Below, in pieces: positions 41,380 through 48,821 of a stretch of 64,000 nucleotides of DNA. Every line of letters starts with the position of its first letter. The first letter of the stretch is position 1. The stretch lies in the NCBI GenBank assembly GCA_025594325.1, contig JANHCV010000010.1, positions 930,001 through 994,000 on the forward strand. Reading direction: 5' to 3'. The notes beneath the pieces were generated by a model, which had not been told where the DNA came from, did not search any database, and worked only from the letters and a program-made list of their open reading frames with translations. A program made the translations under genes and the position numbers. Source of the DNA: Blastocladiella emersonii ATCC 22665. Taxonomy: Eukaryota > Fungi > Blastocladiomycota.

Positions 41380-42383
41380 TTATCGGGGTGCCCGCGTGTA
41401 ATCTTCGGCAAAGGTCTCGATCTAGCGAGCGGGAGTCGCGTCGTCAGCCGAGCCCGCGGGCGCGAGGGAGGGGAACAGCGTACCGTGAGCAAGCTGGCGT
41501 CGACCGTCTTGAAGGCGACGAGGCCGACGGGGCGCGACTCCTTGATGGCCTGCAGGTCGGGGACCTCGGAGCCGCCGGGGATCCACATGTCGCCCTACAA
41601 CGGCGAGCGTGAGTTGGGCGCCCTCGCGTCGCATGGTAAAGAGGCCGGATGCGAACCAGTGGTGCGACCACTTCGCCCGGCTTGGCTTGCTGGAGCTTGC
41701 GGAAGGCTTCCGTAGTGAGGTCCGCGGCCACGACGAAGGTGCAGTCTAGAGCAAGCAACGCGTTAGTTGACCTACGCGACGACGCGATGTAAATGAGGGC
41801 GACGCACCGGATCGATCGGGAGCGCTGAACTCGGTTGGACCGATGGTCTGCAGGCGCAGGAGCGTAGCCTTGAACTCGGTCTCGAGCGAGGCGAGCGTAA
41901 TGGGTGCTGTGAGGCTGCGATCAGGGCCACGCGTCAGTCAGAGAGGGAGAGCGTCTAGGAATTGCAAGGCGTCCGTACTCTCGGTGCGGGGTCCCGCTTC
42001 GCAGCCCGAGCAGCAGATCGATGGTGGGGCGAACGCGGAACACGATGCGCTCGAGCGGCTCGCCGGGCACGTCGGGGTTCACGACGAGGAGCGAGACGGA
42101 CTCGATGGTCATCTACAGAGGGAATCGATGAGAAGAGAGCTGCTTGGCCGTGGATTCGACAACGGCAGCGTACCGCCTCAAGCGCGGGCCGCAGCGGTTC
42201 CAGCACCGACCGCACGTATCGGATGACGGCGGGGCTGCGGCACGCCTTGACGGCGACGCCGTAGATCTGCGCGTCGCCAAAGATGTGCGGCGGGTACAGG
42301 CGGCGGGCGTGCAGCACGACGTGGATGGCGGCCTCGAGGAACTCGAGCGTGCTGCTGAGCACCTGCGGGAACGAGAGCAGCAT
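41380..42383 (-). CDS. REV7: REV7/MAD2L2 HORMA-domain protein, multi-exon
   Basis: LEFLEAAIHVVLHARRLYPPHIF...YGVAVKACRSPAVIRYV, PLERIVF, LETEFKATLLRL, DCTFVV, MWIP, and terminal IETFAE. Confidence 0.88.
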
Positions 42384-42507
42384 GTTGCCTCGGGTGCTGC
42401 TACGAGTCACCGCGTTACATTCAAGGGTGCAATTGCATCGAGTCCCACGTCGAGGGCGGCGGCGAAGCGGGGCCGGACGCGACGGCGAGGAAGCGCAGAG
42501 TCTCGTG

Positions 42508-43578
42508 ATGGGCGCAGGGACTCACGGTCCGGTCCGCAGACGCACCGCTGCTGGCCTCACGCTCAGCCAGGTGCTCGCCGAGGCCGACAAGCTCGAGGTC
42601 CACGGCTCGGTCCAGGTCCCGATCCCGGGCGGCCGTGACAAGATCGAGTCGCACAAGAAGAAGATTGTCATCCGCTACGGCCAGCGCATGTTTGTCATTG
42701 ACGCCGGCGTGCGCGACTTCCTCACCGGCTTCGTCGTGCCGTTCGAGCTCGCGCGCCTGTTTCGGCGGCTCCAGTACCTTGCGTACTTGGCGGCGCAGGG
42801 TGGCGACGGCCCGTGGTCCGAGGTGCTCAAGGCGTACATTCGGTCGGCGGTCTCGCGCGTCGTCCTGACTCGGCCGCTGTTCCGGTCGCTGTCAAGTCGC
42901 GAGTTCCACCACCACGTCGGCACCGACCAGGCTCGCGAGCAGCGCAAGGCGTCGCGCGTCAAGGCGGGCCTCGTACCAGGCGATGCAGCGCACTCGTGCG
43001 TTGCCGGCGACCACCGCGCGGTCGCTCGGGTCGCCACCGAGTACATGGAGGCCAAGGTCGAGGAGAGCTGCAGCCACGGCGTGTGCAGCACCAAGTTCAC
43101 CAACGAGGGCCGCCGCAAGGCGTACTGGGCCGACCTCGCCCGCGCGCTGCGCGGCCACGTCGTGCTCATCGGCCGCAACTTCTCGGGCTTCGGCATGATC
43201 TCCGCGGCCGACAAGGGCCCTGTGGTCGAGATGGTCAAGGAGCTGCGCTCGCGCGGCGTCACCGTGTACGCCGTCGACGAGAACTACTCGAGCAAGTGGT
43301 GCGCCGCGTGCGCCATGGCCGACCCCGCCGCCGCCAAGGCCGACAAGACCAACCTGCTCGGCAAGACCAACAAGAAGGTGTACCAGACGCGCGCGTGCCG
43401 TCGCTGCGGCGTCCGCGTCCAGCGCGACCGCAACGCGGCCGTCAACATCCTCTCGTTCGCCATCAAGCAGCTCATCTTCGAGGACCAGGCCAAGGACGCG
43501 GACGGCAACCCGCTGCCTGCCGCCCGCCCCAAGCACCGCTACCACCGCAAGCGCCGCACCACGCCCACGGTCGAGTAG
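42508..43578 (+). CDS. Compact TnpB/Fanzor-family RuvC nuclease, 356 aa, N-terminal REC/WED lobe largely missing
   Basis: RuvC-I FVIDAGVRD (Asp 42700-42702); VVLIG...GP..EMVKEL; RuvC-II VYAVDENYSSKWCAAC (Glu 43279-43281); second CxxC CRRC; RuvC-III QRDRNAAVNI (Asp 43426-43428); basic tail RPKHRYHRKRR. Confidence 0.85.
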   Translation: MGAGTHGPVRRRTAAGLTLSQVLAEADKLEVHGSVQVPIPGGRDKIESHKKKIVIRYGQRMFVIDAGVRDFLTGFVVPFELARLFRRLQYLAYLAAQGGDGPWSEVLKAYIRSAVSRVVLTRPLFRSLSSREFHHHVGTDQAREQRKASRVKAGLVPGDAAHSCVAGDHRAVARVATEYMEAKVEESCSHGVCSTKFTNEGRRKAYWADLARALRGHVVLIGRNFSGFGMISAADKGPVVEMVKELRSRGVTVYAVDENYSSKWCAACAMADPAAAKADKTNLLGKTNKKVYQTRACRRCGVRVQRDRNAAVNILSFAIKQLIFEDQAKDADGNPLPAARPKHRYHRKRRTTPTVE

Positions 43579-43860
43579 TGCAAGCCGTCCTTACCCTTCT
43601 TCCCTCACCATCCACCAGCTGGGTTGGAGCGTGTGACACGCATCGTGTCCGCACGTCCGTGCTTCCCTTGCCAAGACCACGAGCACGCGCTATGCTTAGG
43701 AGTCAGCGGCGGGGCGGTGGCTCGAATAGTAGCAAGCGAGCTCAGCTGCGAGGTGCCCTTGCCCTGCTGGGCCGGGTGACCCTCGTTCGGCCGCATCGTC
43801 GGCCGGTGCACTTTACCTCCAATTTTTGTTGTTTGATTGTAAACGCACCGCTGCTGTCTC
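43579..43860 (+). ncRNA. Candidate omega-RNA / structured 3' flank of the Fanzor-like ORF
   Basis: Hairpins GACACG-cat-CGTGTC (43635-43649), GCAC-gtcc-GTGC (43651-43662), GCTCG...CGAGC (about 43720-43741), and CGGTGC..TTTAC...GTAAA..GCACCG (43804-43850). The position matches that expected for a Fanzor guide scaffold. Confidence 0.3.
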
Positions 43861-43997
43861 AGTCTCGGGGCCTTCGCTCTCTCCCCTGCCCGCATATATT
43901 AAAGGAGTTCCCGAGCCTTACCACTCCGGGCAATGTAATCTGACCGGTTTCCTGCCGAGCCAACTTCTGCGAGCACGATACCCGTCATTCCCACGCC

Positions 43998-48821
<4,824 letters not shown>

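Follow-up and report, generated by a model that had tools for sequence, protein, structure and literature searches.

The 64,000-nucleotide (nt) stretch of the Blastocladiella emersonii ATCC 22665 genome analysed here, called the window throughout (contig JANHCV010000010.1 of assembly GCA_025594325.1, positions 930,001 to 994,000), contains an open reading frame (ORF) at 42508-43578 on the plus strand, with 356 uninterrupted codons plus stop, that is annotated as a gene in the assembly and lies between a REV7-like gene and a CtIP/Sae2-like gene. A preliminary description of this DNA had recognized a compact RuvC nuclease of the TnpB/Fanzor type in the ORF and had offered two readings of it, a domesticated minimal nuclease or a recently truncated Fanzor remnant. 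The second of these has held up and the first has not, in the light of near-identical copies elsewhere in the genome, a start codon that belongs to the flanking DNA and a 14-bp target-site duplication (TSD) around the insert. Very probably, the ORF corresponds to the last two-thirds, on the 3' side, of a gene of the Fanzor1 type (Fanzors are eukaryotic TnpB-like proteins that cut DNA under RNA guidance). The copy of a low-copy mobile element to which it belongs is 5'-truncated, probably dead, and sits between the REV7 and CtIP genes.

The open reading frame and its protein product

The motifs listed in the preliminary description, with their spacings and the basic tail, are all present in the 356-codon ORF. 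The RuvC-I catalytic aspartate, D65, lies in a VIDAG motif (42700-42702); the alternative RuvC-II glutamate, E258, follows 193 codons later in VDENYSSK (43279-43281); the TNB zinc ribbon is made up of C265/C268 and C297/C300 (43300-43407); and the RuvC-III catalytic aspartate, D307, is found 49 codons after E258 in QRDRNAAVNI (43426-43428), ahead of a basic C-terminal tail that resembles a nuclear localization signal (NLS). The position of the canonical RuvC-II glutamate is occupied by Gly222, in LIGRNF (43171-43173). Residue conservation was read from an alignment of 12 family members, where D65, E258, C265, C297, C300 and D307 are invariant and C268 and Gly222 nearly so; E258 is invariant in two family alignments. 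Replacement of the canonical RuvC-II Glu by Gly or Pro, together with an alternative conserved Glu elsewhere, constitutes the rearranged catalytic site that is a hallmark of Fanzor proteins (PMC10530073), and this is the arrangement seen with the nearly invariant Gly222 and the invariant E258. The order of residues also fits the motif published for the TnpB/Fanzor superfamily, D-X(125,275)-[TS][TS]-X-X-[C4 zinc finger]-X(5,50)-RD (Bao & Jurka 2013, PMC3627910), with D65 followed by S261, S262, K, W, C265xxC268, C297xxC300, five residues, and then R306 and D307.

Profile searches and structure prediction lead to the same family. Residues 247-314 match the Pfam profile PF07282 (Cas12f1-like TNB) with an E-value of 1.4e-10 and 41.6 bits, above the cut-off of 26.3 bits, while the NCBIfam profile guided_TnpB matches the C-terminus only, with a score under its cut-off. 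A search of the PDB by sequence only gave matches confined to the segment from the zinc ribbon to RuvC-III, and profile-to-PDB hits to Fanzor1 were marginal (E 0.01-0.02). The AlphaFold2 model of the 356-amino-acid (aa) product has a predicted local distance difference test (pLDDT) score of 79. When this model was searched against the PDB with Foldseek, SpuFz1 ranked first (E 4.8e-6), followed by the Parasitella Fanzor1, Cas12 relatives, a mimivirus Fanzor2 and ISDra2 TnpB, with a probability of 1.0 each for SpuFz1, Cas12f, TnpB and ApmFz2. VIA-align Z scores were 13.8 for SpuFz1 (222 aligned residues), 11.6 for PpFz, 10.1 for ApmFz2, 9.8 for ISDra2 TnpB and about 8-9 for Cas12f; for this modelled product, the structure scores thus favour Fanzor1 over Fanzor2. 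Profile, motif and fold agree, and assignment of the product to the TnpB/Fanzor family of RuvC nucleases, as proposed earlier, is sound: the PF07282 match is above cut-off, the motifs are invariant and the fold is like that of SpuFz1.

The homology covers only the C-terminal part of these enzymes. Residues 45-324 of the model align to residues 362-623 of SpuFz1 and 182-378 of ISDra2 TnpB only, and an N-terminal block conserved in family members, WD..L...TDGY..RV..YKGG, has no equivalent in the window copy. A longer paralogue, P0006 (639 aa; P-numbers denote B. emersonii proteins), overlays SpuFz1 49-623. The N-terminal half of the AlphaFold2 model of P0006 has a pLDDT below 50, so the assignment of WED and REC domains in the family is a low-confidence overlay. 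As far as these models indicate, the absent WED and REC would be a defect of the window copy and not of the Fanzor family. The preliminary description had put their absence down to a lack of room between the ORF and the upstream gene; the insertion was instead cut short, and the insert itself fills some 1.3 of the 1.6 kb between the two genes. In Fanzor and TnpB proteins, it is WED and REC that bind both the omega-RNA and the duplex of guide and target. Since they were never copied here, the product alone should not act as an RNA-guided nuclease and is most likely a non-functional remnant.

Boundaries, sister copies and the borrowed start codon

A protein search found four B. emersonii paralogues with 88-95% identity and lengths of up to 580 aa, and their loci, along with one more, were compared with the window by DNA (L001-L010 are B. 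emersonii genomic loci fetched for comparison). Together with contig depth, blastn defines an element copy of 1.29 kb at 42553-43843 on the plus strand, which consists of the RuvC/TNB coding part and a 3' tail and recurs at least five more times in the genome with 94-97% nucleotide identity. Blastn identity is 96.4-96.6% to the copies in L001 and L002, 94.7% to L003 and 96.1% to L004. All six copies terminate on one and the same base, some 265 nt downstream of the stop codon, at ...TTTTTGTTGTTTGATTGTAAA, and the flanks beyond it are unrelated. At the 5' side they have six different ends, all of them within the gene. Expressed in window coordinates, where the window copy starts at 42553, the L001 copy is the longest, those in L002 and L004 start 278 nt and 78 nt further upstream, and the shorter copies in L003 and L005 start at 42628 and about 43080; three of the five sister copies therefore extend further 5' than the window copy.

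Independent confirmation comes from the contigs of three DNA runs made on the same sample. Word depth in these contigs stays near 161 on either side of the element and climbs 4- to 15-fold, to 600-2500, across 42548-43843. Loose ends 'before' occur at 42553, 42628, 43082 and 43258, and loose ends 'behind' at 43835-43842; the one at 43258 constitutes a seventh 5' end. Contigs span both junctions of the window copy, the right one being bridged by a contig of 4845 nt.

The boundaries are marked by a direct repeat. The 14-nt sequence ACGCACCGCTGCTG at 42540-42553, at the left boundary, is repeated at 43843-43856, at the right boundary; it is the sole exact 14-nt direct repeat in 42000-44300, its two occurrences have a spacing of 1303, and it coincides with both ends of the element. 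Its first A and last G may belong to the element, which gives a TSD of 12-14 bp. The 3' flank begins with T or C in five of the six copies.

The start codon of the ORF lies outside this element. Fanzor homology begins at codon 16 (42553), and the ATG at 42508 falls 45 nt beyond the boundary; codons 1-15 (42508-42552) are flanking DNA and codons 16-356 are Fanzor sequence. Upstream of the position equivalent to 42553, where a loose end is found, the longer copies run into unrelated coding sequence. Composition changes at the same point: the G+C fraction at third codon positions (GC3) rises from 0.60 across codons 1-15 to 0.94 in those that follow. In the 67%-GC window, 37% of random 90-codon frames are open, so that the upstream openness of the ORF is unremarkable. 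The frame of the insert would simply happen to continue open into GC-rich flanking DNA, where an ATG mimics a complete gene of 356 codons. That third positions are mostly C or G, as had been remarked, is confirmed by the GC3 of 0.94 in the Fanzor-derived codons (0.69-0.82 in the neighbouring genes); the high value is a property of the whole Fanzor family and not of the REV7-CtIP locus.

The L001 copy was considered as a full-length master and ruled out, as Fanzor homology begins only near L001:10538. In this region (L001:8684-10267 and L001:10001-11959), the gene model of P0001 is chimeric, with a predicted intron that joins an unrelated first exon to a truncated Fanzor copy; both this exon and an ORF of 527 codons upstream come from another, unrelated multi-copy family of B. 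emersonii (P0020, P0022, P0023) that has no Pfam domain. The P0004 model is also chimeric, with an unrelated N-terminus resembling a coiled coil. At L004, which is on the window's own contig, two Fanzor-like genes on opposite strands (L004:19090-20631, minus strand, and L004:11051-12411, plus strand) are separated by 7 kb; one, that of P0004, is a truncated copy of the family, and the other encodes P0007. P0007 is a divergent paralogue of 505 aa with about 30-45% aa identity, and an AT-rich ...ATTGTAAATA motif is found about 225 nt past its stop codon. A 244-nt repeat (95% identity) adjoins the 5' junction of the L004 copy (L004:10814-11057) and recurs 10.8 kb upstream (L004:47-290), representing either an unrelated family or a local duplication.

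Truncation is also found in a second, 70%-diverged Fanzor subfamily, in which L009 (3974-4881) is a 5'-truncated copy of L010 (5042-5944) with a common 3' end. In this P0008/P0009 subfamily the two loci are 93% identical in nucleotides, and the shared end lies about 119 nt past the stop codon at a different terminus, ...GTGTGGAAAGCGCCC. No TSD was seen around L009 in exact and local-alignment searches.

Insertion site and standing of the window copy

The upstream neighbour is a REV7-like HORMA gene on the minus strand (41380-42383; gene model of 230 aa), whose ATG at 42383 is the one previously placed 124 nt from the ORF. Its first exon gives a weak HORMA match (E 0.006, under the cut-off), and the name REV7 is plausible, not proven. 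The downstream neighbour on the plus strand (43998-47941) is CtIP/Sae2-like, with a PF08573 SAE2 C-terminal domain (E 8.7e-9). Of the 1.6 kb that separate the two genes, the insert occupies about 1.3 kb, leaving 156 nt to the REV7 ATG and 141 nt to the CtIP ATG. With the insert and one repeat removed, about 310 bp would separate the ATGs at 42383 (minus strand) and 43998 (plus strand), and the window copy would have inserted into this former divergent promoter, duplicating 12-14 bp of target. Most simply, then, a copy landed in the short REV7-CtIP promoter, and the DNA-repair neighbourhood is a coincidence.

No transposase gene was found near the window copy and no terminal inverted repeats around it, in agreement with what had been reported before; around the fuller paralogue in L006 no convincing terminal inverted repeats were found either.

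Substitutions place the window copy among the youngest, as it has fewer private ones than any sister copy: 10 in all, four synonymous, four non-synonymous and two in untranslated regions (UTRs). Sister copies are decaying: the reading frame is shifted in L003, and additional stop codons occur in L004. The L003 lesion is a 1-bp deletion (L003:10001-10983, equivalent to window position 43218), and gene model P0003 masks it by skipping the segment with the catalytic Glu.

Could the ORF nevertheless encode a domesticated minimal RuvC nuclease, guide-independent or differently targeted and perhaps tied to its DNA-repair neighbours? It is annotated as a gene, its frame and catalytic residues are intact, its GC3 is 0.94, its tail is basic and NLS-like, and ratios of non-synonymous to synonymous rates (dN/dS) between copies lie below 1. 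Against this, high GC3 is family-wide, only 10 private substitutions separate the copy from its family, and chance insertion into a shared promoter accounts for the REV7/CtIP setting. The genome has at least 6-8 near-identical copies, this one included, whose truncation points differ; the start codon and first 15 residues of the window copy come from the flank, and the TSD around it is the scar of a recent insertion. Near-identical longer copies elsewhere, named in the preliminary description as an argument against domestication, do exist, with five copies at 94-97% of which three reach further 5'. As a test of domestication, dN/dS was discarded as uninformative between paralogous copies of a transposable element. 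Among private changes, synonymous GC3 sites change at 0.027 per site, exceeding UTR sites 2.6-fold, and non-synonymous changes accumulate at roughly the pace of the UTR; dN/dS is therefore unable to demonstrate selection on the window copy. Taken together, domestication is highly improbable.

Another possibility is that the truncated copy is expressed from the REV7-CtIP bidirectional promoter with some side effect, as a dominant-negative partner of full-length Fanzors, as a source of omega-RNA for a Fanzor acting in trans or through misregulation of REV7 or CtIP. In its favour, the insert lies 156 nt and 141 nt from the two ATGs, and its 3' tail is complete with a conserved hairpin and terminus. 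Against this, the fold energy of the tail is no better than that of shuffled sequences, and no full-length intact partner of the subfamily was found among the annotated proteins; such an effect is improbable, if slightly less so than domestication.

The reading of the ORF as part of a truncated and probably dead element copy has to be set against several observations that weigh against it. The window copy retains an intact ORF and an intact catalytic triad, and pairwise dN/dS among copies is 0.26-0.65 and not 1. Values below 1 are expected for copies of a selected master lineage and for hypermutable GC3 sites, but they do not prove neutrality. Exact and local-alignment searches to 1.5 kb upstream found no TSD around the five other copies, so that one of six copies has one, and the left TSD follows the four bases GCAG, unlike the T-rich site described in Helitron2 elements of Chlamydomonas. 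No full-length master, RepHel partner or reverse transcriptase (RT) partner of the family was identified among the loci compared.

The result is mainly a correction: a gene-like ORF with a perfect catalytic triad between DNA-repair genes is a transposon fragment with a borrowed start. The ORF in the window provides no evidence for an RNA-guided nuclease that dispenses with WED and REC, nor for domestication.

The 3' tail and the spread of the family

Every copy has the non-coding 3' tail (43579-43843, plus strand), down to an identical final base, and its terminal 21 nt, TTTTTGTTGTTTGATTGTAAA (43823-43843, plus strand), form their common 3' end. The tails fall into two subfamilies, A (the window, L001, L002 and L003) and B (L004 and L005). 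Between A and B, identity is 99% in the last 140 coding nt, 43-64% in most of the tail and 100% in the last 20 nt. The divergence sets in about 15 nt past the stop codon (window:43579-43843 compared with L004:12153-12411 and L005). This switch suggests that element lineages have recombined or that copying has changed templates between them. A hairpin at 43629-43656 on the plus strand is kept across the two subfamilies: A and B have 43% sequence identity here, yet both fold to a stem of 11-12 bp with a 3-nt loop, with five compensatory pairs between them.

The omega-RNA or fRNA of TnpB and Fanzor systems is structured, is encoded 3' and extends to the right end of the element. The whole tail of the window copy folds no more stably than shuffled sequences (z = -0.01), and Rfam gave no meaningful match within 43300-43950. 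RNAalifold predicted a 15-bp closing helix between 43456-43472, a purine-rich segment inside the ORF encoding ..FAIKQL.., and 43826-43842 in the invariant T/G-rich terminus; this helix, predicted without covariation, could be a scaffold stem like that of an omega-RNA, or chance. The conserved hairpin and terminus faintly suggest that the tail may act as a functional RNA or DNA terminus, whether as a putative scaffold of omega-RNA or as an end used in transposition.

The shared 3' end, the 5' ends truncated to different degrees and the long TSD together suggest that copies arise by a 3'-anchored process. Such copying, with a common last base and variable 5' ends, would multiply the family, and one-ended rolling-circle copying of the type seen with Fanzor1-carrying Helitron2 elements would be its closest documented precedent. 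Rolling-circle copying may be taken as a tentative first choice; retroposition is rather doubtful, and some other process equally so. Against the rolling-circle route stand the GCAG ahead of the left TSD, in place of a T-rich site, and the lack of a RepHel-like partner among the loci compared. No RT, RepHel or transposase domains were found among called genes neighbouring the fuller paralogues, and a search for the 3' tail, limited to the window and the fetched loci, turned up no further occurrence.

Retroposition would have a resident non-LTR (non-long-terminal-repeat) element carry out target-primed reverse transcription after recognizing the 3' hairpin and tail. The common 3' end, the graded 5' truncation and the TSD of 12-14 bp are what such a process leaves behind, and the mosaic of coding sequence and tail between subfamilies is compatible with template switching. 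Yet the copies end in ...TTGATTGTAAA, without a poly(A), A-run or simple-repeat tail, five of six copies have no TSD, no RT element with the same tail was found in the window and fetched loci, and an identical footprint is documented for Fanzor1 in Helitron2 DNA elements (PMC3627910). Fanzor1c, for its part, has been reported near long interspersed nuclear elements (PMC10530073). A stronger version, in which the B. emersonii Fanzor1 families as a whole spread via an RNA intermediate and a non-LTR RT recognizes the 3' hairpin and the invariant 21-nt terminus, would explain both the graded 5' truncation and the 12-14-bp TSD of the window copy; we regard it as unlikely. If it were true, the Fanzor gene and its guide-RNA scaffold would be passengers of retrotransposition and not of a DNA transposon.

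The distribution of the family was surveyed by phmmer with P0001 as query against 1.8 billion representative proteins. There were 22 matches, 20 of them in B. emersonii, with one metagenomic protein and one orchid protein. Sixteen of the 20 B. emersonii matches hit the Fanzor-derived part, one is the query, P0001, and the remaining three (P0020, P0022 and P0023) align with its unrelated first exon only. The orchid protein, annotated as serine racemase, matches in six short stretches and is probably spurious. The Fanzor clade is real, very divergent and, at the sensitivity of phmmer, largely restricted to B. emersonii, a species that would thus harbour a diversified and nearly exclusive clade.

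The window copy can be compared with three known systems. The first is the Fanzor1 protein SpuFz1 of Spizellomyces punctatus (PDB 8GKH). Residues 1-361 of SpuFz1, comprising WED and REC, are without counterpart in the window copy, and sequence identity is just 15-17%; in both proteins a C4 ribbon splits the RuvC fold, the active site is rearranged with the Glu of ..E.YSSK.., and the C-terminal tail is basic. Bacterial TnpB (ISDra2, PDB 8H1J) and Cas12f share the core of RuvC plus TNB, as is reflected in the matches of Pfam TNB and NCBIfam guided_TnpB to the C-terminus. Unlike these proteins, the ORF has its canonical RuvC-II Glu replaced and a long helical insertion in RuvC, it occurs in a eukaryotic host with GC3-rich codons, and the window copy has no equivalent of TnpB residues 1-181.

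For the element as a whole, the relevant system is that of CRe-1/2/3 of Chlamydomonas reinhardtii, which are non-autonomous Helitron2 elements carrying Fanzor1 and are often 5'-truncated and nearly all 3'-intact (PMC3627910). Their truncated copies have variable TSDs of 7-19 bp, with fewer TSDs in older families, and a T-rich target (Bao & Jurka 2013, PMC3627910). Elements of this group are further marked by termini (ATIRs, 5' and 3' hairpins) that they have in common with a RepHel-encoding Helitron. Accordingly, 5' truncation, 3' over-abundance and variable TSDs are already known for Fanzor1-carrying Helitron2 (PMC3627910); what is added for the window copy are the exact boundaries, the flank-derived ATG, the 14-bp TSD, the promoter context and the division of the tails into two subfamilies, between which a hairpin covaries. 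Finding so clean a TSD, of 14 bp, around a young copy adds a data point on the still unexplained mechanism of truncation and TSD formation seen in Chlamydomonas. The window family differs from CRe-1/2/3 in that GCAG, not a T-rich sequence, precedes the TSD of the window copy and in that the shared part of the family has no introns; it resembles them in its 5' truncation with 3' over-abundance and in the 12-14-bp TSD of the window copy.

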